64,000 nucleotides of DNA. Source: Epiperipatus broadwayi (lineage: Eukaryota; Animalia; Onychophora). The position numbers and the translations under genes were made by a program. The notes beneath the pieces are model-generated. The model was given only the letters and a program-made list of their open reading frames with translations. It made no database searches and was not told where the DNA came from. The first letter of the stretch is position 1, and each line of letters starts with the position of its first letter. The stretch lies in contig JAQFVV010000004.1 in NCBI GenBank assembly GCA_028023455.1, positions 19,964,001 through 20,028,000 of the forward strand. Reading direction: 5' to 3'. This document shows positions 3,481 to 53,590 of the stretch, in pieces.

Positions 3481-3999
3481 TATCAAATTGAATTTTATAT
3501 ATATATCAGTGAAGATATGTTTGATTGTAAAAAATACAATAATATTGTCCAGAAAAGAAATTTAAAAGGAAAATGGTTTAGGTAATAATGGCAAATAATT
3601 CCATAAGTTTAACCTAGTGTAATAATAATTCATAATGTTTGGAAACATTTTATTAACTTTGTCTTAAAAAATGAAGAAATCATAAGACTATCATAAATAA
3701 GTATATTAAATTTCTACTGTCTCTTGCCTTTTATAGAATAGTCTAATTGGTTAAGACAATCATTTTAAATATCTAAAGTTCCCAGATTTGATTTCCATGC
3801 TAGTACAGTTGTTAATCAGACCAGCAACATGCAAAGAATGAAGAAAAAAAATACCATGCAAAATGTTATATGGTAGACTAATCTAATAGTTGGATATATT
3901 TAAAAAGTTTAAATGTTTGAATTTTTTTAAAGATATTTAACAATTAATTCTACATGACGGAATTAATCCATCATATAATTATTACAAAAAAATCAAGTC

Positions 4000-4660
4000 A
4001 GATGTCACATGACTTAATTCAATAAGCTTGTATTTACAAATGTTATATAAAGAGCTTGCAAATAAGCTCTTAACAAGCTTTGCAGGATATCTCTAACCCC
4101 AGACCGGTTTCTGCTACTGCTTTCCTCAGTGAGGTGCAAGGATATTCAAGCATTAGACTAAAAATATCAGGACAAGCCCAGCACTTTATCTAATGTATAA
4201 CTATTAAGTAGAAAATTTGAAAATTTCAGACATCCATATGTCTTCAAATCCAGCTATCTAACTTAAATAGCCATATGAGACTGAACTAAGATCAGATACA
4301 TCATATATTAATAGCTTTAGCAATAAAAAATCACTAAAGACATCATAGCAAAAAATAAAATTACAAAAAATATATGGTGTATCTGAACTTAGTTTAGTCC
4401 CATATGGCTATTTAAATTAGATAGCTGGATTGGAAGACAAATGGATGTCTGAAAATTTCAGATTTTCTACTTAATAGTTATACATTAGATAAAGTGCTGG
4501 GATTGTCATGGTATTTTTAATCTAATCTTGAATATCCTAGCACCTCACTGAGGATGCCAGTAGGAGAAACCGGTCTGAGGTTGAGGAAATTCTACAAAGC
4601 TTGTTAATAGTTTGTTTTGTGAGCTCTATCATATAATTATAAATGTAAATATAAGATTTT
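4000..4660. mobile_element. Family B fold-back element with two oppositely oriented hammerhead motifs
   Basis: Arms of roughly 280 bp (~4026-4308 and ~4371-4655). Hammerhead motifs at 4097-4134 (-) and 4543-4580 (+). Confidence 0.85.
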
Positions 4661-25376: not shown

Positions 25377-25827
25377 TCATACACTTGTAACATTCTGCCA
25401 CATTTCACGTGAGTTCTCACTAAAATAGTCACTGTCATGACGTTCATCTTTTCGCATATTAGCTGCTGGTAGAATAGAAGGGCGTGGTGTATCAATTATT
25501 TTTGTTGGAGTAATATAATAACCTTGTGATAAATCTCCAGTGAGACTTCCACTCCTTGCAGTCAAATCCTTAAAACTCTGAGTAATTTGATCACTGGAAG
25601 AATCTCTTCCTAATTTCAAATTTGGTTTTTGTGAAAATGATAAAGTGGATGATCTTTCAGGAAGTTGCATCTCCAATGAATCAGTTCGTTCTATGGCTAC
25701 ACTCGAAGCAGGAGCATCCAAGCTAGGTGAAATCAGGGTAGGATTATTAGCTAAAATTTCCACAATTTCCCTGGCTGAAGGCCGCCGCTGCGGATTGTAG
25801 GACCAACACAACAACAGCAGAGTTTCT
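25377..25827 (-). CDS. VKR: Receptor tyrosine kinase last coding exon (subdomain XI and C-terminal tail), putative Venus kinase receptor
   Basis: TTTTCAG|A GAA ACT CTG CTG TTG TTG TGT TGG completes the TT|A Leu codon of the previous exon. Encodes ETLLLLCWSYNPQRRPSAREIVEILANNPTLISPSLDAPASSV...WQNVTSV with TGA at 25379-25377. Confidence 0.9.
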
Positions 25828-26746
25828 CTGAAAATATAATAATTATAAAAATATAATTATTTTTGATAAATTTAGTGTTTTTTATTAAATAACTAGGAAA
25901 ATCAATTATTAGTATGTAAGTTTAATTGTTTGCAAAAATAAATAAATATAAATAATATAAAAGCAGGTGTTCCTTCTTAGTGTTTTAAAAACAATGAATT
26001 AGTGTTGTTTAATCAGTGTTGATTCCTGGCTTCCCCAAAAATGACTTGTTATCTAAGTTTTAAGTTTTACATTCATTATACAATAAAAAAATGTATGATT
26101 TGAATCCACTAATACTTTTATTGATCATCCTTCTCTTTTTTTACCTTTAACATATTTTAGCACTTATAACTTTTTTAATAAATTTCTTTCTCTTTTTTTG
26201 CTTGTTTAATTTTAAAATAATAGATCTGAATAAATAATTTCAATCAGTTCTTTAGATTTTTATATAAAATTTCATTTTTATTCAGATTAAAATATTCACT
26301 TTTTTTATAGTACTGTTAAAAATCGCTTTTAACATTTTAGTTTCAAAAGCATCAATATTTTTTCTATTTTTCCATTCAAAAATGCTAAAAATATTATAGA
26401 GCACTTCTAATATATATATATTAAATGCATTTCTTTAAATATAATCTTTTTAAAGGTCTTCATTACAACACTGATAGATGCAGTCAGAAATGAATATTTT
26501 TCTATTCGATCTCTTGGAGTTGACAAGCAACCAATAAGGCAAATTTTATCTATAATACTTGGGATTGCATTTCACTCAATAATTTTCTACATATTCATAT
26601 TTAGCCAATGAACCATATTTTCATTAACATTTATAAAACAATGAGAAAATTGAAAAATCCTATATTTTATTTACAATATTTTTTTTTTTATTGAAATGTG
26701 AAAGTTGTAATAATATAGTTGCATGAAATAAGCAGTTCTAATATAA

Positions 26747-27536
26747 TAATAACATGAAAGGCTGAAACCTTTGACAGATGAGGCTTAAAAATGCTTATAT
26801 GACAACCAATCAGATGTAATAATGACTGCACAAGGGAACTCTTAATTCAAAACATGAGGCAGAGATTTTATGAGAAAAAGATGGTTTCCACCTTCTTCTC
26901 TACTTAAATTTTATATATAAATAAGCCAGACTCAAGCATTTTGAACTAAGAGCATGAAGCTTTAAACACCTTCACATTTAATTCACTAAATATTATATAT
27001 AAATAAACAAAATCTCTGCCTTGTGTTTTGAATTGAAAGTTCTCTTGTGCAATCATTATTATATCTGATTGGCTGTCATATAAGCATTTTTAAGGCACAT
27101 CTGTCAAAGGTTTCAGCCTTTCATGTTAATATTATATCATCTGCTTGTGCTTAATAAATTAATATATTTACATTTGTTAAGATCATTTCATTAGATTTGA
27201 AAATTACTTTGTAGTAAATTGAAAGATTTCACATTGTTCATTTATATATAATATTTAGTGAATTAAATGTGAAGGTGTTTAAAGCTTCACGCTCTTAGTT
27301 CAAAATGCTTGAGTCTGGCTTATTTATATATAAATTTAAGTAGAGAAGAAGATGGAAACCATCTTTTTCTCATAAAATCTCTGCTTTTGTGTTTTGAATT
27401 CAGAGTTCCCTTGTGAAGTCATTATTACATCTGATTGGCTGTCATATAAGCATTTTTAAGGTGAATCAGTCAAAGGTTTCAGCCTTTCATGTTATTATTA
27501 TATCATCTGTTTGTGCTTAATAAATTAATATATTTA
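26747..27536 (+). mobile_element. Family C compound insertion: one inverted unit and two tailed direct units
   Basis: 26747-27006 is the reverse complement of 27238-27500. 27010-27173 is a shorter direct copy. 14-bp direct repeat cagttctaatataa at 26733-26746 and 27537-27550. Confidence 0.85.
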
Positions 27537-28364
27537 CAGTTCTAATATAAGTAATATAAATTAATGACAGGCAAGTCAGATTATGAAAATATATTACTGC
27601 CATGTCCATGGGAAGACAATCTCAGCTGTGTATATGAAAATGAAGAATACACATACAATTTGAATATATATATATATATATTATAACCTACACTCCCAAC
27701 ACTGCTCATATACATTACATGAACAAAATGCCCAGGTGCCAGTTTTATTAATGAATAGAACAATATAACAAAATATACAATACAAAATTATTATTGTTAT
27801 TTAAATGTTTTTATTGTGAATATACTATTGTTTGCTGTTATTAAAGATGAAAATGAAATGAAACATAATGCAGAGTCATACATGCATACACATGTACTAC
27901 AACCTAAATATTGAACTATCTTAACTAAATATAATTGAAACTGCTATTAACTGTTGACAAAAGGATAAGAATTAATGAATAAAGGATTTTGAAACCATTC
28001 AAATAATACTACAATAATATAAAATAACTTTGCATCTTTCCAACAAGATGTATCAATTCCATTAATAAACAACCCCCCCTTCCTTACATTAAATACCTCA
28101 TTAACCACAATAATACTAATAAATACTTATAAAGTGGTCAATAAACTGCATAAGCAATCCATATTTAAGCTTTAAACAATCTCCAGCAAAAATTTTAAAA
28201 TTCCAAGGTTATTTCATTTTTTTTATACAATATAACTATTTAATTAAGATATAAAGTATCTTAAACCCTTGTGCCCATTCAGATGGTCACAATATATATA
28301 TATATTCTGAAAAGCTTGTTAAGAGCTATTGGCAAGCTCATTAGATAATATATATATATATATT

Positions 28365-29172
28365 GATACAAAGAAATTTAAATAAGCCTCTTTTAACAGG
28401 TAAATATAACCTATTCTGAATGCAGTTTAATAAATAGTCAATTATAACATTACAAACTGCAATTATAATTTTTAAATTGCACCCAAAGTATTATTTAAAT
28501 AATTACATTTTCTATTACAAGATATTCCATATTCTTTTAAATTCATATAAATAGAGATACAATAAAAGACAAATGACCCCCAAGATGCATTTCATGCTGA
28601 ACCAGCACTCATCAGTTGTCCAGGTCACTATCACTCATATATATATATATATATCATATCTTTATTATATGAAAAATATTTATCTGTATTAAATAATTAC
28701 ATTTTGAATTACAAGTATCAAATTAACTCAACACACATCTTTGATACTATCCAGTTTAGATAAATATAGTAACGACTCTTATTAATCATTAACTAAACTA
28801 GAGATTATCTCTAGCACAGATATAAACTTTAAAATTCAATTAAAGATTGATATATCTGATTTTTAATAATTAAATATGTGTACTAATGCTCAAGGCTAAA
28901 AAGGTTTGTAAGTAATCATTAAAAGCCAGTCAACATTAGACAATCCCAGTATCAGTAACAATAAACAATTTCAAACTGTTGTCATGGCAACCTCCTTTTA
29001 ACAATAAAGGTGGAATCCCACCTTTATTAATAGTCTAATATACTTATGTAGACTCTAAAGGTTGCAACTTGACCACTGAGATTGAAATTATTGATAAAAA
29101 GAAGTTTAAATAAACCTCTTAAAACAGGTAAATATAAACTATTCCGAATGCAGACTAATAAATAGTCAATTA
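28365..29172 (+). repeat. Dispersed ~80-bp direct repeat pair
   Basis: ttgata.aaagaa.tttaaataa.cctctt..aacaggtaaatataa...gaatgcag..taataaatagtcaattat occurs at ~28365-28445 and ~29092-29172. Confidence 0.75.
28574..28627 (-). ncRNA. Minimal type-I hammerhead ribozyme, intact core
   Basis: Minus strand: TGACC TGGA CAA CTGATGA GTGCTG GTT CAGCAT GAAA TGCA TC/TTG GG GGTCA. Stem II is 6 bp, stem III is the palindrome ATGCAT, stem I is bipartite. Predicted cut between 28584 and 28583. Activity not tested. Confidence 0.8.
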
Positions 29173-29379
29173 TCCCACTTGCACTAATCTGTAGAATTTT
29201 TTTAATTTCATTTTATGGTTGTCAATATTAAATAAACAAAAAATAACCTTATGTTTCATTTGTTAATTGTATTAAGATTGAAAATTAACAGTTTACTATT
29301 TGTTGATTATAACATGTTTTTAATCTGAGCAAGGCAAGCCACATTAAACCATCTCATGGGCCATACATATGACCCACAG

Positions 29380-30180
29380 TTTTCCAACTCCTATTATATA
29401 TAGAAGATATGTTGATGATGTATTTGTATATGGTCCAAAAACATGAATAGAAAATATGTTAAGTGTGTGAATGAGAATTCAGATTTACAGTGGACAATTG
29501 AGTATAAAATGAGACATTGTTTAAAATATTTAGATGTATGTATATCTAGAAATATTAATAAATTTGATTACAAAATGATTGTAAAGCTAAATGTAAGGGG
29601 ATTTATACATCCTTATGTTATGCATTCCCTTAAAGTATAAGTTTTCAGAATTTTTTAATAATTTTTATCTATTTCCTATTTAGAATTACAGTTTAAAACT
29701 GACTAGTAAATTTCTTAGTTTATTGCACTAATTTTTATTTATGTAAATTAGAGGTAGATAAGCAGAATATTGAGATTTATATTAAAGTTTTAATAAACAT
29801 GGGCTGTAAGGAAATTTTATTATTAGACATTTAAAATTATTTTATTAAAAAAAGGCAAATTAAAGCTTGATGAAATTAAAATTAATAAGAAATGAATTTC
29901 TTTGGCTTATGTTCCTAATTTATATTCAAAATTAAGAAAGTTTATTTTGAAAGATTTTAATATCAGATTTCCTTTGTCTTTAAATGTATTAATAAATGAT
30001 GATAAGAATAAAATAAAGCAGGCTGATAAACATCAAATTTTATCTTCAATTGAATACGAGGGGTCTAGTTGTTCTTCCATTTTGAGAAAAATTCTGACAT
30101 GATTGTAATCTCAGAAAATTAACATTGTATATAATGAATCAAATGATACTACACTGCTAATTTTAACAACATTATAAGTC
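29380..30180 (+). mobile_element. Decayed Penelope-like RT and linker relic
   Basis: YRRYVDDVF (~29400), QWTIEYK...LKYLDVCI (ORF 29443) and LAYVPNLYSKLRK...NIRF (ORF 29902) follow the PLE RT/thumb/linker order. Confidence 0.7.
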
Positions 30181-30977
30181 AAAAATTTAATAGTGTGTAA
30201 TTGAGTATGCTCTAGAATTTTGTCATTAAACTATGTTTTTTTTTCCATAATTGTTTGCTATGGTTTTGGTATACTGTGTTGAAAGTACATTCAGCTATTA
30301 ATATTTTTTAAAAAAATAATTACTTTACCATATTGATATTCATGTCCTTTATCACACACATATATACATAAACAATGAAATTAACAACTTTTCAAATCCC
30401 ATAATTGTCTAGCAAACATAAAATAGGCATTTGTTTTTATAGAGTTGGCAAATCTGAAAAGTGATTTTATTCAGGGTGAACTTTAAAACAATCCCAGATG
30501 GAAACAGTCTTCTTTAATTCTGCTAAATTTTAAACTTCACAATATAGTCTTCATTTCTATCACTTTAGAATCTTTGTAAATTAATAATAACAATAATGAG
30601 CATGTAAAAATTAATAAATACAGCATTTCAAACTAAGGGTAAACAATGGAATAATTAACTTTCCAAACACTGTTAATTCCAACATCTAGCAAAGGTAAAG
30701 TGTGTATAGTGAATTTTTAATGGAAACTAATGAATATAAGTTTTGTAAGCTATATGAAAATACATTATAAAAGAAGGTAAAGTGTTTTTTTTTTTTATAA
30801 TTTTCTTGTCAAATGTACATCAAATTTATTTTATTGTTAATTTTTAAAAAGAATAACATATAAACTGCTCTATAATAAATAATTAAAGTATTAAAATTTG
30901 AAAGTTATTTTTAAAATTAAAACTAAGAAACAATATAATAATTCCATCATCAGCAATAATCCACTTAACATTATTCT

Positions 30978-31059
30978 GTCAAACGTTGATGGCCTAGTGG
31001 TTAGCGTAGCTGCCTTCCAAGCAGCTAGCCTGGGTTGCTTCCTGGTCAACACATTTGAC
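30978..31059 (+). mobile_element. tRNA-Gly(TCC)-derived SINE or tRNA pseudogene
   Basis: ACGTTGATGGCCTAGTGGTTAGCGTAGCTGCCTTCCAAGCAGCTAGCCTGGGTTGCTTCCTGGTCAACAC has an A box (TGGCCTAGTGG) and a TCC anticodon arm. The T-loop lacks the C of TTCG and the acceptor stem is mismatched, so it is not a functional tRNA. Confidence 0.75.
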
Positions 31060-32672
31060 ATATGAAAAAAAACATTACTCTATTCTGGAGGCATATCTGC
31101 AAGCATGAGTACTCAGAAACAAACCTGGGGATCTGGTTAATACTGCCAGCTGATATCCATTTATCACTAATATTTATATAGATGGATTTAGAATAGAATG
31201 ATATAGAATGAATTACAGCAAATAATGTAAATATTAAAAGGTAGCAGTCGTGAGATGGCTTTTTGGGTATATATTTTAATGTAGATGAGAAAGTAGTTTG
31301 ATACTTGATTTGCAATAATTTTAAATATTTTTTAAATATCATTTAAAACTTAAATAGCACTAATGATTTTAAAAAAAACTTAAACCTTAGTAAAATATAA
31401 TTTCCATATTTAGTTAAAAACTACATTTGTTAAATATAAGTTGAAGTTAAATAAATACAATTGTTTCATATAAGTTTAATTCTAGTCTATCAAACCACAA
31501 CATACTATAATTTACTATTCTTATATCTGGTACTATATGAAATGCACAATTTGTTCGATATTGAATATATATATACTTTTAATATACGATGAAAATTATA
31601 TATATTATTATTTTTGTAAATATCAAATGTAGTTTCTATATATGTATAAATTGTTATCTATAAAAAATAATCAAAATTTAAAATAAATGTAATTGTATAC
31701 TTAAGGCTATAACTAACGATAATGTAAAATTATGAATAATTAAAAGTTTAATGCAGTAATTAGAAAACATCTCTAATTAAAGGATTAAAATTGCAATTTT
31801 AAGACAACTGTAACAAAATAAGCAAACGCAAATATAAAATTCCTTTGCCAGATAACAAATTATTTAATATCCCCAATGGCGTTGTACGTTAGAAAATTAT
31901 GAATATTAAAAGACCTGTCAGAATAGACTGTCAAGGAATTCATGAAATATCATCTCAAAGAGACTGATCTCTGTAGACCAAAAAATAGATCTATGATACA
32001 AATACAGATCATGTAAATATTTTATAATTTTTGCAGATGTTTGGGTACAGAGTAATTATTATATATAATACCTTAATATATATTTATGAGTTATTAACCA
32101 TTGTATATAAGTAATTATCGAAACTCAAGATATTGTTGTATATTGATGTCTGTTCTTTTAACTACTGTATAATAAATGTTATTGTTAATTATTCTTAGTT
32201 GTTGAACTACATTTATTATATTTTCTTTTAATTTATATTCAGCTGATAGCTTGTTCAAATTAGTCTAAATCTTCTTGGAAATCCAACTTGTAATAAGCAG
32301 CTATAATAGGCATAGTCAACAGACAATCTTCTGATGGAATTATAGATTGCAAATTGATATGGTACTTCAGTCAAAACTGAGTTTGTTTTAATAATAAATT
32401 GGTGTAATCTTGGCAGAAATTTAGATTAAATAATTTTTAGATTATATTATTCACTTGAAGATGGCCAATAAAAACATAAATATGTGCATTGTGTAAACTA
32501 TAAAGTAATTATTGATAAGTTCAGAAATTATATTTTCCCCTTTCAGGCCCATATAATTTTTTCAGTTGGAGAGCTGACTTTAAAGACATGCAGATGTCTA
32601 AAAGTTTAGATCTTCTTCTTGAAAATTATCTTTTAGATAAATGCTTAGCTTGAGTTGGTTTTTGGAATCTAA

Positions 32673-32729
32673 TGTCCCAACTCCTCACTGAAGAGACCCA
32701 TAGGTCGAAACCGGTCTGGGGATGGGGAC
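32673..32729 (+). ncRNA. Minimal type-I hammerhead ribozyme, intact core
   Basis: GTCCCAACTCCTCA CTGAAGA GACC CATA GGTC GAAA CCGG TC/TGGGGATGGGGAC. Stem II is 4 bp with a tetraloop, stem III is the palindrome ACCGGT. GUC cut predicted after 32716. Confidence 0.85.
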
Positions 32730-32775
32730 AATCTAAGATAAAGATTATTTGAATGCCTTCTCTTGTAGTAGCATT

Positions 32776-33193
<418 letters not shown>

Positions 33194-34569
33194 GCTTGTT
33201 TAGAGTGTTAGCATGCTCTTAAGTTTACATATTGATGAGTATATATATATATTGTACACAAAATTATGTCATATAAGGTTACATACTTACTTTAATCAGT
33301 GTATAATATATTCATTATACAGGAAACATAGTTGCAATATTGAGGAATAGTTGCTTATTATCAGTTGGACTTCCAAGAAGAATTAACCTCTGATAAATGG
33401 GATACCAGCTGAATATGCATTTTAAGAAAATGTAACTCAATAAATGAGAACAGTTAACAATAACATTTATTAAACAGTAGTTAAGAGAACAAATATCAAT
33501 GTAAAACAACTTTATGAGATCAGACAACTATTTACATTGTAGCCAGACATGTTGAAGTTTCAAGCCAAGAAAGCACATATAATGTGCATGTATGATAATG
33601 TGTGTAATAAATTCTAATGAAGTTTACTTCTCTTTGGTTCAGTAATAAAGTGGCAGATTTTAGAGTTTAAGATACATAAATTATGACCTAAAGACTTTGT
33701 TTCTTCCTGTACTCAAATTTCATTTGATTATTTATTTATTAATTTCCCATTTCATTCTAATATTATTTGAAAATGTTATTACTATTATAATTGCTGCTAA
33801 TATTTTTACAATATCTATTAGTACTGCAATAATAATAAATGGCATTAATATTAAATAACTATAAATATTATTCTGAAAATTTATATTTCATTGTATTATA
33901 TATATGGTAAATGGGTTGTGCTATTAATTAACATATTAAATGTTAAAAAATGAAGACATTTAATTAAATAATTAAACTAAACTAATCTAACTAATAATCA
34001 GAGACTGTAACATTTGTTATAAAATATAATATTTAATAACAAAACTTATAAAACAACTTGATGTAATATTTAAAATAGCACAACTTTCTGTAAACAATTA
34101 TTAACAATGAATAATATTTCAGTAGTGTAATTTTCATTACATTACTCTCATGCAAGGTAGGAACTGTTTTTTATCCACTTTTAACATCCATTTTTACTAC
34201 ATTACTCTCAAGCAATATAGGAACTTTTTTCTACACTCTAAACACCTTGGGTATAAAAAATGAATATAAACAGTCCCTGCCTTGTGTGAGAATGATGTAG
34301 TGAAAGTTTTACTACAGAAATATTATTCATTAAATGGATAATCTCTAATCTAATGAATAATTAATAAAAATGATTAATTATCAACAATATTTTAAATTTA
34401 ATATCTGTATCTATTTTGTCCTATTTTATCACATTTTATCTGAGATTTAAAATTTAGAATAATTTCAATATTTAATATTAATTATTTAACACTAATTATT
34501 TAATTAATTATTAATTATTTAATTAATGTTAATTATTTAACATTAATATTTATCATTAATGAAGATAAT

Positions 34570-34791
34570 AAACAAGGCAAAACTCTCCATACAGTAGTGC
34601 CACCCTGTGCCAACCAGAGTAATCAATCAATGCCAGAAGGCTTGTGCATAAAATCCCTATCTAGTGCCTACTCATCCAATATCCCCAGACTAGTTTCTGG
34701 CTTGTGGCCTTCATCAGTGAGGAGAGTTTTGCCTTGTTTATTAACAATTATGTGCTAGTATAAGAGATAGTGATCATGTGATGTTTAGAGT
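34570..34791 (+). mobile_element. Family A copy in kinase intron
   Basis: Inverted segment holds a complete hammerhead motif on the minus strand (34683-34722), followed by a short direct arm and tail. 14-bp direct repeat ttaatgaagataat at 34556-34569 and 34792-34805. Confidence 0.88.
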
Positions 34792-37512
34792 TTAATGAAG
34801 ATAATGGCATATACTTTTTTCATCAAATAAATTAAGCATAAATACATAAAATTACATTTGTTATAATATTACATAATAACAATAGAATAAAACATTTTGT
34901 TATCTTAAATCTTCTCTTCTTCTCCCAGAAAGAAAAATAGCATGAAATACATTATAATTTTCCCTTCAGTTTAGAATTATTTAATACAGGAATTCAATGG
35001 TGGCCATATGATTTTATTGGTTTCAAACTTATTTGATATAGAAGGGAGTTACAATTTTTAGGAGATCAAAATAAATGAATGTAAAAATAATAAATTATTT
35101 ATTTTGATATTTATTATTTCAATATTTATTAATAAAAGCAAGATCATAATTATTGTCATTGTAATTATACTGTCCATAATTGCATTTACTTATAATCATG
35201 TAACTACAAAAAAAAAAAAAAACAAGTTTATCCAAAAATTTAATCTAAAATTTAGTGAGATATTTATTGGTACAATTTTAATAGTGGGAATGTGTAAGAT
35301 GTATTCAAAATTTTTATCAATTATTCAGGATTTATTTATTGATTTAGTAAATGTTATTTAGGAAAAAAAATAGTTCACTTCTACATATACTGTGATTTTT
35401 TTTTAAATAAAAATGAATAAATCCCATTTGATCAAAAATTGTCTTATACATATTTTTAAAATGCAAGCTGGATTATGAACTTTCAAATGTTGGAGTTGCT
35501 CATTTTTGATTTAAAACATCAAAAATTAAAAAATTATCAAATTATTTATTTTCATTATTTCTTTTTTTAACCTTAAATAATATATATCATTGTAAAGCTT
35601 CCATGTTTAATTATTTAATTTTTTTATAACATATAGAGGTGATTCCAATCAAATGAAGAATCTCTGAGTAAAATAATATTTTTTCAAATTATTGGAAAAA
35701 AAAAATACTTTTCTTAAAGAAACAAAAAGCAATTTTTCCTGTGCTCTATTTATACAATGAAGACATTCAGATGAGATTTGATAAATATTAGATTTAAATT
35801 ATCAATAAAAATCACAACTCCAAATTATTAAGGTTGTATTTTGTATGATTTAAAACAGTAATAGAATGATGGATTCTAGAACTTAAGGTCAATGGATTGT
35901 AGCTTATTTTTATCATTTCTGGTATTTAAACTCTAATGAACTCTCAAGCAATAACTCATTCATTTATATATTAAAGGTGGCAAATTTACTAAGCTTAAAG
36001 TTTTTTTCTTGAAATACACTTTATAAAAAATTATTTCTCCAAATAAACTTTTTTCTGTCATCATCCTCTTCTTTTTATTTTTAAAATATTTTCAAGCAAT
36101 GTTTTGATTAACCTTTAAATTGTCTCTTTCTAAAATCATTTTAACTATAACTTTTTATAATTTTTTGTGTGTGTGCCCAAGTATAAGATTTCTAGGAATA
36201 GCATTTTATGGGTTAATCTAAATCCACTACTAAGAGATTATGAACTGGACAAGCATTAAATTGAAAAATAATTATTACTGTTTAAATGGGAGAGAGAAGT
36301 GTAGACAACACAATCAATTAGACAAACTTTAATGGAACATATGTATAATAGTGCATTCAATTAGAAACTGACTTATATTAATGGTATTCACGGACCCACT
36401 GTTCCATGAAATAAATTCAATCCCTAACTTTAATATATTATTACAGACTATTTAATTATTACTATATAGTCTTAGTGTATTCATAAAATGGAGGAAATCT
36501 GGGGTAATTATATTAGTTACATAAAGTGCTTTCAATGCTAACATAGGGAGGAGTCTCTAGAATTGTCAGAGATAAACATCTCCTAGGCAAAAAGTATGAT
36601 TATTTAAGGTATTTTGTTCCTTGATTTTTATTGTTTTTTTTAGTCAATGATCAATTACACGATCTGACTTATTTGCCAGAATCATGCAATCACTTCTACA
36701 AAATTTATACATGTCTACCTAATAAAGGATAATCTAGCTCTGCTAATATGGAATTAACATTTCAAGTTAATTACTTACGTACTGTGTTTCAGTGTATTTT
36801 TATCTACTACATATAAGTACAACTACCACATATATGTTTATTATACACCTTCATCCATGTGATTACACCTTTGCTTATATGAATTCATTAAGCCCTATTA
36901 TACATAGATCATATCTCACATACATATGTAAATATTTCTTATGTATATACAATTGTATATTGTACAGATATTACAGAATACTTTATAAAATCTTTGCAAA
37001 TAGTGATTTGCTTAAAAACTCACCAAGTAGAGCAAGTAAATAAAGCTCTATTATGTGAATATAACAAATTGCATGATTGACATAAATTAAACATTGCTTA
37101 TTCCATATAGCATAAAATTTAACCACTTATTAAAGCAAGCTACTGTCCTATTTCTTTTCAATTTTACACTTATTCATGACAGTAATAAAATTATAAATGC
37201 TGCCCGAAACTTCCTACTTTTAGCAGAGATATCATATAAATATTTAGCTCAATTTAAATAAATATATTTCATAAAAATATATATAGTAATCAGAGCAAAC
37301 ACTTGTTTTTTTTACATCCATTTGCATTCATACAAAAGATATATATTTATTATATCATTTATTGTTTTTTTCCCCACATCGTAAGTGTTAAACAATGTTT
37401 ATACTCACAGACAAAATAATTATTATTAGATTTCTTACAACATAAAGCTTTTATTGGCTAAACCTTAATAGCTCTTTAGTATAGTAACTTACAAATAATT
37501 ATATATACTTAC

Positions 37513-37720
37513 AATTGTGGGTTACAAGCTTCAGGTACTTGTAAGGTATTCCCTGTCTTAACATAATCTAAAACTTGATTATTAGAAAGCCCTCGGTAAG
37601 GAAAACTTCCAAAGGTAACAATTTCATATACTAATACTCCATAACTCCATACATCAGAAGCTGGAGTATAGATACCTTCTTCTAGACTTTCAGGTGCCAT
37701 CCACCGAACAGGTAACATAC
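37513..37720 (-). CDS. VKR: Receptor tyrosine kinase internal exon (subdomains VIII-X), putative Venus kinase receptor
   Basis: TTTGTAG|GT ATG TTA CCT GTT CGG TGG...CCA CAA TT|GTAAGT. 208 bp, phase 1 in, phase 2 out. Encodes [70 protein letters not shown]. Confidence 0.92.
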
Positions 37721-38271
37721 CTACAAATACATTGTACATAATAAATCAATAATGGCAGTCATTAATTTTTTTAAATACAGTGGGGAAAAAATCAAAATAC
37801 AAATAAAATAATGATTGTGCAAATTTTAAAATTACTTTGCTTTAGACAATTTTGAATAGAACTAACAATATGCTACCTGCAACTGACAATTAATTCATCA
37901 TCTAGTCAAAAGTAAGAATTGAAATGTTTTAAATTCTATTATGCTTAAGTGGAAAATTCAATTACATGTTTTCATTTACTTTTTTGTATGATTATATGCT
38001 TTAGATCTAATTACGTAATAATGTTAATAAAATACAAAGTATTTTTGACTATTTCTAATATAATTGATATGTTGAAATAAATTATAATTTCCGATTAAAA
38101 ATTAAAGTTGCAAATACAGAAAATTTACCACACACATAAAACAGCACCTATTACAATAGAAAACACAATCAAGTTACAGCAGTCAGCAAATGTTGAGTAA
38201 TATTGGAATATGCTGATGACAATGATAAAGACTCAAATGATATTTTAGAGAGTGAATATTATTTTCATCCT

Positions 38272-44564: not shown

Positions 44565-44930
44565 AAAACATCACATGATCACTTTTTCTTATACTTACAT
44601 CTACTGTTAAAACAGTAGCAACTTTTTTACACACAGTTGCGCCATCTAGGGTAAGCTCTCATAATCAAAATGATGCTAGAAGATTGTGCACCATAATCTC
44701 TGTCCAGTGCCTTCCTATTCAATATCCTTGGACTACTTTCTAGGTTATAACTTTCATCAGTAAGAAGCCTTAGATCTGGGAACAGTGCACCTGAATTTTA
44801 TAGTCTGAGGGTATTGGAAAGGCACTGAATAGGGAATTATGATGCCCAATCTTCTAGCATCTGTTGATTACTAGAGCTTGCACTAGATGACACTATTGTG
44901 TGAAAAAAATTGCTACTGTTTTAACAGATG
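44565..44930 (-). mobile_element. Diverged family A relative (AAAACAGTAGCAA subfamily)
   Basis: Reverse-complement tail aaacatcacatgatcac, inverted arms, and a degenerate hammerhead CTGATGA AAGTTATAACCTA GAAA GTAG TC at 44726-44765 (-). Confidence 0.75.
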
Positions 44931-52768: not shown

Positions 52769-53590
52769 AACCAGACAAAACTCTCCATACAGTATTGTCA
52801 CTGAGTGCAAACCAGAGTAGTCAATGGATTCCAGAAGGCTTGTGCATAAAATCCCCAGACTAGTTTCTGGCTTGTGGCGTTCGTCAGTGACGAGTCTTGG
52901 ATCTGAAAGTACTGCTCCTAGATCTTAGGATCTAATGCAACCCTCCACCAGCCACCTTTTATCTCTACCTAACTACAAAACTATGAGTCTTAAATTAAAA
53001 ACACAGTAATATTTTCAATCCAAGCTCATTAGCTTATATAGTCATATATTTCTGAACTCAATTCAGTACCTATACAATTTGGTGTCTTTGGTTCTTTAAT
53101 AACCATAGCCACCACTATCCTATTAGGCAGGATCATGTGATGTTTATTAACTTAAAACTAATCCTGCCTAATAGGATAGTGGTGGGTATGGTTATTAAAG
53201 AACCAAAAACACAAAATGTATAGGTACTGAACTGAGTTCAGACCTATATGACTATATAAGCTAATGAGCTTGGATTGAAAATATTACTGTGTTTTCAATT
53301 TAAGATTCATAGTTTTATAGTTAAGTAGAGATAAAAAGTGGCTGCTGCAGGGTTGCATTAGATCCTAAGATCTAGGTGCAGTGCTCTCAGATAGAAAGCT
53401 CCTCACTGATGAAGGCTACAAGCCAGAAACTAGTCTGGGGATATTGGATGAGTAGGAACTAGATGGGGATTTTATGCACAAGCCTTTTGGCATCCATTGA
53501 TTATTCTGGCTTGCACTCAGTGGCAATACTGTATGGAGAGTTTTGCCTGTTTTAATAACAGTTATAAGCAAGCATAAGAAATGGTGATAG
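52769..53590. mobile_element. Head-to-head inverted dimer of near-full-length family A units
   Basis: 52769-53134 is the reverse complement of about 53160-53552. Hammerhead motifs at 52853-52892 (-) and 53401-53440 (+). Tail follows the right unit. Confidence 0.88.

Follow-up and report, generated by a model that had tools for sequence, protein, structure and literature searches.

A truncated hammerhead-bearing repeat in the sense strand of a tyrosine-kinase intron of the velvet worm Epiperipatus broadwayi

The window analysed here is a 64,000-nt stretch of the onychophoran Epiperipatus broadwayi genome (GenBank assembly GCA_028023455.1, contig JAQFVV010000004.1, positions 19,964,001 to 20,028,000 of the forward strand) with a GC content of 25.5%. 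Part of a tyrosine-kinase gene was located on its minus strand:

37513-37739, minus strand: stretch of a tyrosine-kinase domain exon, with subdomains VIII-X (Pfam PF07714, E 2e-23)
25828-37512, minus strand: phase 2 intron, running from a GTAAGT donor (37512) to the last base of a TTTTCAG acceptor (25828)
25377-25827, minus strand: following coding exon, encoding kinase subdomain XI and a C-terminal tail up to the stop codon (open reading frame and frame continuity)

The GT-AG intron is 11,685 nt long, and the reading frame across the 37512/25828 junction continues into the subdomain XI motif (..CWSYNPQRRPS). The two exons were searched one by one, and the exon at 25377-25827 by itself gave no Pfam hit. 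The initial annotation had placed a hammerhead ribozyme in the sense strand of this intron of about 11.7 kb, and the donor, the acceptor, the frame continuity and the PF07714 match all agree with it; judged from these sequence features, the hammerhead at 28574-28627 lies, in sense orientation, within an intron of a predicted receptor-type tyrosine-kinase gene. The same intron contains, antisense to the gene, a tRNA-Gly(TCC)-like sequence at 30983-31053 (plus strand), which scores 29.7 bits against an Rfam cut-off of 29 and is also called by ARAGORN. It could be a tRNA pseudogene or the head of a SINE.

The hammerhead motif is described below together with the repeat family to which it belongs, named family H here, a hammerhead-bearing family that includes the interval 28877-28504. 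Its elements, read along the minus strand from 28627 to 28574, are the following:

28574-28627, minus strand: type I hammerhead motif (direct sequence read; pair counts in 89 family H copies; family pattern, 5,780 versus 0)
28627-28623 with 28578-28574, minus strand: distal helix I, UGACC paired with GGUCA, then an internal loop
within 28574-28627, minus strand: proximal helix I, CAA/UUG (direct read)
28615-28609, minus strand: hammerhead core CUGAUGA (direct read)
within 28574-28627, minus strand: helix II, GUGCUG/CAGCAU, 6 bp, loop GUU, closing pair G10.1-U11.1
28593-28591, minus strand: G12 A13 A14
28590 with 28585, minus strand: helix III, A15.1 with U16.1, 1 bp, palindromic loop UGCA
28583-28584, minus strand: predicted scissile bond, 3' of C17 (28584), triplet AUC

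All core nucleotides (C3 U4 G5 A6 N7 G8 A9, G12 A13 A14, A15.1-U16.1 and H17) are present, at 28615-28609, 28593-28590 and 28585-28584, and a type I hammerhead motif with a complete core and all three helices is confirmed. The core nucleotides, the 6-bp helix II with its G-U closing pair, the AUGCAU palindrome, the AUC triplet and the helix I segments had all been correctly read in the initial annotation, as had the predicted cleavage position at 28584/28583. This bond lies 8,928 nt downstream of the intron donor and 2,755 nt upstream of the acceptor.

The motif had also been called intact. This holds for the core but not for the helices, since the 54-nt motif differs from the family consensus by two changes, C11.1 to U and the loss of one helix I C. 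The first replaces the G10.1-C11.1 pair of the family H consensus by G-U. The second shortens the proximal helix I from CCAA/UUGG to CAA/UUG, so that helix I, which is open (type I), has 3+5 bp where the family consensus has 4+5. The earlier reading had missed these departures from the family consensus, and also that the motif sits inside a mobile-element insertion.

The fold of the motif region is thermodynamically unremarkable (minimum free energy -14.1 kcal/mol, z = -0.75); the hammerhead fold without helix III, at -10.7 kcal/mol, lies 3.4 kcal/mol above this minimum. The predicted dimer fold was uninformative, showing a trivial helix II swap. An Rfam hammerhead search had been proposed as a check, and here the outcome was negative: the hammerhead covariance models gave no match at gathering score or at E<=10 in the window, in a 600-nt region or in a consensus tandem copy from elsewhere, and Hammerhead_1 does not score the H ribozyme, either in the 28574-28627 copy or in the consensus copy. 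The sole Rfam hit overlapping the motif, SNORD113 at E 5, was judged meaningless. Rfam hammerhead models, as tested on these two copies, therefore miss a family with at least 5,780 motifs, and annotation based on such models will not flag them.

Other hammerhead-like motifs are present in the window, in which a relaxed core pattern gives 35 matches against 7.45 expected (0 of 100 shuffles as high). A second hammerhead family is found at 34688-34717 (minus), 44731-44760 (minus), 52858-52887 (minus) and 53406-53435 (plus), with the core CUGAUGA (CUGACGA at 52858), a 3-bp helix II closed by an A.A pair, the loop III CUAG and a helix I of CCUCA/UGGGG; its core-intact member at 34688-34717 is another sense-strand motif within the kinase intron. 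A third family, at 32688-32716 (plus), 4102-4129 (minus) and 4548-4575 (plus), has an ACCGGU palindrome and a GUC triplet. Its member at 32688-32716, with the loop CCGG, is core-intact, has a 4-bp helix II (GACC/GGUC) and lies antisense in the kinase intron.

Homologous copies that conserve the core, on whose existence the initial annotation had made its reading depend, were found elsewhere in the genome. In the 5.6-Gb assembly the pattern CTGATGAG-N10-20-GAAATGCATC has 5,780 matches, and the reversed control has 0. A 201-nt query around the motif returned 1,409 first-look candidates, with scored copies at 82-90% identity, and the second, non-ribozyme part of the unit returned 1,232. BLAST against fetched loci set the limits of similarity at 28877-28528. 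Hammerheads in tandem H units are spaced by 400, 406 and 413 nt, giving a family unit of about 400-413 nt.

Across 89 distinct copies, the drawn structure pairs in 92% of cells; shifting the partners by 1-3 columns lowers this to 31-46%. There are 15 cells with changes on both sides of a pair, where shuffles give 7.8 +/- 2.5 and reach this level in 1 of 500, a weak signal given that the copies are related to one another. Most of these cells reflect a single switch in distal helix I, from C-G to U-A, present in 7 copies. On these alignments, the helices are supported as a trait of family H. A literature search for the exact H ribozyme sequence found nothing relevant.

The copy in the kinase intron interrupts a second tandem repeat, named family F here:

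28504-28877, minus strand: solitary, 5'-truncated H copy, 374 bp (BLAST limits against 19+29 genomic copies; alignments)
28495-28521, minus strand: copy of the family H 3'-terminal motif (..CTTGTAAT..AAAATGTAATT) directly after the unit, a 27-nt direct repeat at 93% with 28689-28715
28878-29173, minus strand: upstream part of repeat F (354-bp tandem unit, no hammerhead core)
28361-28503, minus strand: downstream part of repeat F, its last 85 nt repeating 29089-29173 and marking the F tandem unit

The H copy has a GC content of 23.5% and no open frame longer than 65 aa, and its sister copies extend at least 25-30 bases further upstream. Other H insertions end at the same terminal motif as the one at 28495-28521, the last 9 nt of which overlap the resumed repeat F as junction microhomology. 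Relative to the usual insertion, the copy lacks the linker, most of the partial second unit and any inverted arm. A target-site duplication is not claimed, the best candidate at 28504-28877 being an ambiguous 5-bp AT-rich match. It differs by 5.1% from the consensus of 51 related copies, the median of which is 7.5%, in a sample partly picked by similarity to this very copy.

Family F has more than 3,000 first-look candidates in the genome, without the hammerhead core pattern. Paralogous F arrays run uninterrupted across the H insertion point, and H is therefore the later insertion. A recurrent H-into-F junction was considered and rejected: a single locus, L088, can be aligned beyond the 3' junction, and that alignment is gapped, AT-rich and of low quality. 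Just beyond the F copy, a 34-nt imperfect palindrome lies between two (TA)n runs (28292-28359); one of its arms resembles the region 5' of the H hammerhead core plus a TA run (71%), without a hammerhead core.

For the layout of H insertions, 29 loci were chosen by the non-ribozyme flank of the unit. Most of these contain head-to-head arrays, and in about 17-19 of the 29 the array ends at one fixed unit position (28684-28697 in the window, motif ..AAAATGTAATT). The typical dispersed insertion comprises about 1.45 units with only one hammerhead, and its ends do not lie at the cleavage site. Taken over the family, H copies show a partial tandem, an inverted arm, a fixed 3' tail and variable 5' truncation, and are spread over many contigs. 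This matches the footprint of a Penelope-type insertion, of which the copy at 28504-28877 shows the tail motif and the 5' truncation only. The sequence features of retrozymes (short tandem units, non-coding, low GC) are likewise found in family H, with 28504-28877 as a single truncated unit.

A partial-tandem organisation and an internal start of reverse transcription (the 'tail') have been shown for a Penelope-like element (PMC11167929), and a preprint derives animal retrozymes from Penelope-like elements (10.64898/2026.07.22.740005). Because its insertions have the Penelope-like partial-tandem, head-to-head layout and a fixed tail, H is placed among the animal non-LTR retrozymes. The best explanation of the sequence data is that H would be a non-autonomous, non-coding retroelement, a non-LTR retrozyme of the type that Penelope-like elements mobilise, and the Penelope/retrozyme architecture proposed in the initial annotation holds.

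A six-frame search of the genome for GIY-YIG domains gave more than 10,000 candidates. In three Penelope-like elements examined, YVDD and GIY-YIG motifs are present in tandem open frames of 875-901 aa. The 901- and 875-aa frames were identified by these motifs in translation and by the six-frame search, which scores their GIY-YIG domain above the cut-off, while Pfam hmmscan of the same two frames returned nothing. The three elements resemble neither H nor the window in sequence and contain no hammerhead with a canonical core; H thus shares neither a hammerhead nor a terminal sequence with these RT/GIY-YIG elements. Across about 250 kb of loci, no Penelope coding fragment lay beside an H copy, and no autonomous partner of H was found among the three elements compared.

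Two observations were made on these elements themselves. The frames at L089:401-3103 (plus) and L091:333-2957 (plus) are extremely K/N/I-rich, and composition filters probably hide such Penelope-like frames from routine annotation. Between the open frames of the tandem elements lies a minimal hammerhead-like motif (L089:3403-3445, plus; L091:3261-3303, plus; L090, minus, about 3810-3851). Its core is UUGAAAA, with U3-A8 replacing C3-G8; A9 is followed by an additional A, and helix III is ACGU. The 6-bp helix II pairs in both of two 66%-identical lineages (GACUAU/AUAGUC versus GAUUGU/ACAAUC).

The two changes in the ribozyme appear to have different histories. The helix I deletion variant occurs 3 times genome-wide, and because it is so rare the deletion probably took place after insertion. 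The change of C11.1 to U falls at the only CpG of the H unit (C11.1-G12), for which exact 32-mers were counted genome-wide in three states:

CG state, consensus: 1,927
TG state, U11.1 as in the 28574-28627 copy: 1,088
CA state, G12 to A, a dead core: 520

Deamination in place is expected to give TG and CA equally. Non-CpG rates in H are about equal (C-to-T 0.096, G-to-A 0.110), and the flank-selected sample has 16 TG against 8 CA by row count. With equal non-CpG rates, the excess of TG suggests that elements with U11.1 kept transposing and that elements with A12 did not. The U11.1 of the 28574-28627 copy may then have been inherited, and a G-U pair at this position need not kill the ribozyme. 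Among hammerheads, G10.1-C11.1 is otherwise highly conserved (PMC4209133). The TG/CA imbalance would provide a cheap, sequence-only sign that the ribozyme (G12) is needed for spread and that G-U at 10.1-11.1 is tolerated.

The full core is kept in 12 of 38 flank-selected H copies, about the expectation from some 8% divergence over 13 fixed positions, and the ribozyme columns are 85-91% identical to the consensus, compared with 88-90% in the flanks. Sister copies thus appear to lose the core at a neutral rate, with no sign of selection once inserted.

A life cycle for the element can be proposed from published work. The hammerhead would cut multimeric transcripts of tandem units into unit-length RNA, which tRNA ligase can circularise and which a Penelope-type reverse transcriptase would copy. 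One H copy would have landed in the sense strand of the kinase intron, inside the older repeat F. With one hammerhead and a 1-bp helix III, this copy would need a second hammerhead with the AUGCAU palindrome, and none with the UGCA palindrome (GAAATGCAT-type) was found in the window. Cleavage by a single Penelope hammerhead motif was undetectable, and constructs with two or three motifs had low activity (PMC4209133), in agreement with the poor monomer cleavage stated in the initial annotation; amphibian retrozyme hammerheads must likewise act as dimers (PMC7229834). Cleavage of the kinase pre-mRNA would be slow or absent in the interval before the 3' splice site, 2.8 kb downstream, has been transcribed, because the intron offers no partner, the 10.1-11.1 pair is G-U and helix I carries a private deletion.

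It is thus considered quite probable that the 28504-28877 copy is a tolerated relic that cleaves the pre-mRNA little or not at all and plays no role for the kinase gene. The initial annotation had left this as one of two alternatives; it is favoured by the solitary, 5'-truncated and mildly decayed state of the copy, by the neutral loss of the core in its sisters and by the lack of a same-palindrome partner in the window. Some activity is nevertheless possible, since no core nucleotide is missing and the two long helices can still form; a partner could also come in trans from abundant H transcripts made elsewhere.

In the rival reading, the hammerhead would work in the nascent transcript, either by itself or paired with other H RNAs in trans via the AUGCAU palindrome, so that the intron would be cut before splicing and the kinase mRNA lowered or tuned, or the intron turned over faster, as with the intronic CPEB3 ribozyme. 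The motif does have a complete core in the sense strand, but as a solitary copy with a 1-bp helix III it has no cis partner. Pairing through the six-base palindrome would give an intermolecular helix III of -6.1 kcal/mol; against this, helix I is weakened by its private deletion, and in vitro such motifs show no activity as monomers and little as dimers (PMC4209133). The counts (1,088 versus 520) suggest that U11.1 variants can propagate, whereas inserted sister copies decay neutrally. An intronic self-cleaving ribozyme can reportedly compete with splicing (PMC10919898), and the kinase intron holds a second sense-strand, core-intact hammerhead, of another family, at 34688-34717; yet about 42-44% of the retrozyme copies of Xenopus overlap introns, a commonplace though under-represented position. 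An active hammerhead is therefore judged unlikely. A broader version, in which the sense-strand, core-intact retrozyme hammerheads (28584-28615 and 34688-34717) cut the nascent pre-mRNA by pairing in trans with abundant retrozyme RNAs of the same palindrome, is thought very unlikely; if true, the output of the host gene would depend on retrozyme expression.

Alternatively, H could be a satellite or a segmentally duplicated tandem repeat, with the 28504-28877 copy having arrived by duplication at the DNA level. Tandem units do occur, but copies are scattered over many contigs, with a common fixed 3' end, variable 5' truncation and head-to-head inverted arms. The copy at 28504-28877 has no clear target-site duplication and its junctions are AT-rich and ambiguous, but it breaks an F unit that is continuous in paralogues. 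Its flanks are not common to other H loci, except for short AT-rich look-alikes and the gapped 82% match about 40 nt past the 3' junction in L088. DNA-level duplication is accordingly held to be highly improbable. A chance match to the hammerhead consensus in an AT-rich intron is a negligible prospect, for although a loose core pattern is not rare in the window (9 matches versus 2.7 expected, 5 of 100 shuffles as high), the thousands of homologous copies with the same helices, the genome-wide pattern count and the pairing test rule it out.

The motif, probably a relic of a retrozyme insertion, is not specific to the kinase gene. It is an ordinary example of its kind and matters little by itself. 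Newt satellite 2 and Schistosoma Sm-alpha carry type I hammerheads with an unstable helix III that are active as double hammerheads in multimeric tandem-repeat transcripts. H resembles them in being type I with an unstable helix III and differs in sequence, unit and host.

The self-cleaving HH9 and HH10 ribozymes of amniote introns (PMC2933863) and the intronic CPEB3 ribozyme (PMC10919898) share with the 28574-28627 motif a sense-strand position within an intron of a protein-coding gene. Those ribozymes are reported to be single-copy, conserved at orthologous sites and built on stable helices, whereas H has thousands of copies and decays neutrally.

H resembles the minimal hammerheads of Penelope elements (PMC4209133) in several respects: a 6-bp helix II, a short proximal helix I (4 bp in the H consensus), palindromic helix III positions, G10.1-C11.1 in the H consensus and a predicted ability to work only as a dimer. 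Unlike these, H has no extra nucleotide between A9 and G10.1, has a 4-nt loop III and lies in a non-coding unit rather than in the flanking repeat of an RT/GIY-YIG element. The Penelope-like elements read in this genome also differ from H, in their UUGAAAA core and ACGU helix III variant.

The metazoan non-LTR retrozymes (PMC7229834; 10.64898/2026.07.22.740005) are likewise similar to H, having a type I hammerhead in a short (150-450 bp), AT-rich, non-coding unit, tandem and dispersed monomer units, thousands of copies, a 1-bp helix III with a small palindromic loop and a Penelope-like insertion layout. They also differ from the material described here. Most dispersed H insertions comprise about 1.45 units with one hammerhead and end at a fixed internal position, and the copy at 28504-28877 is solitary and truncated, and so would be unable to release a circle.
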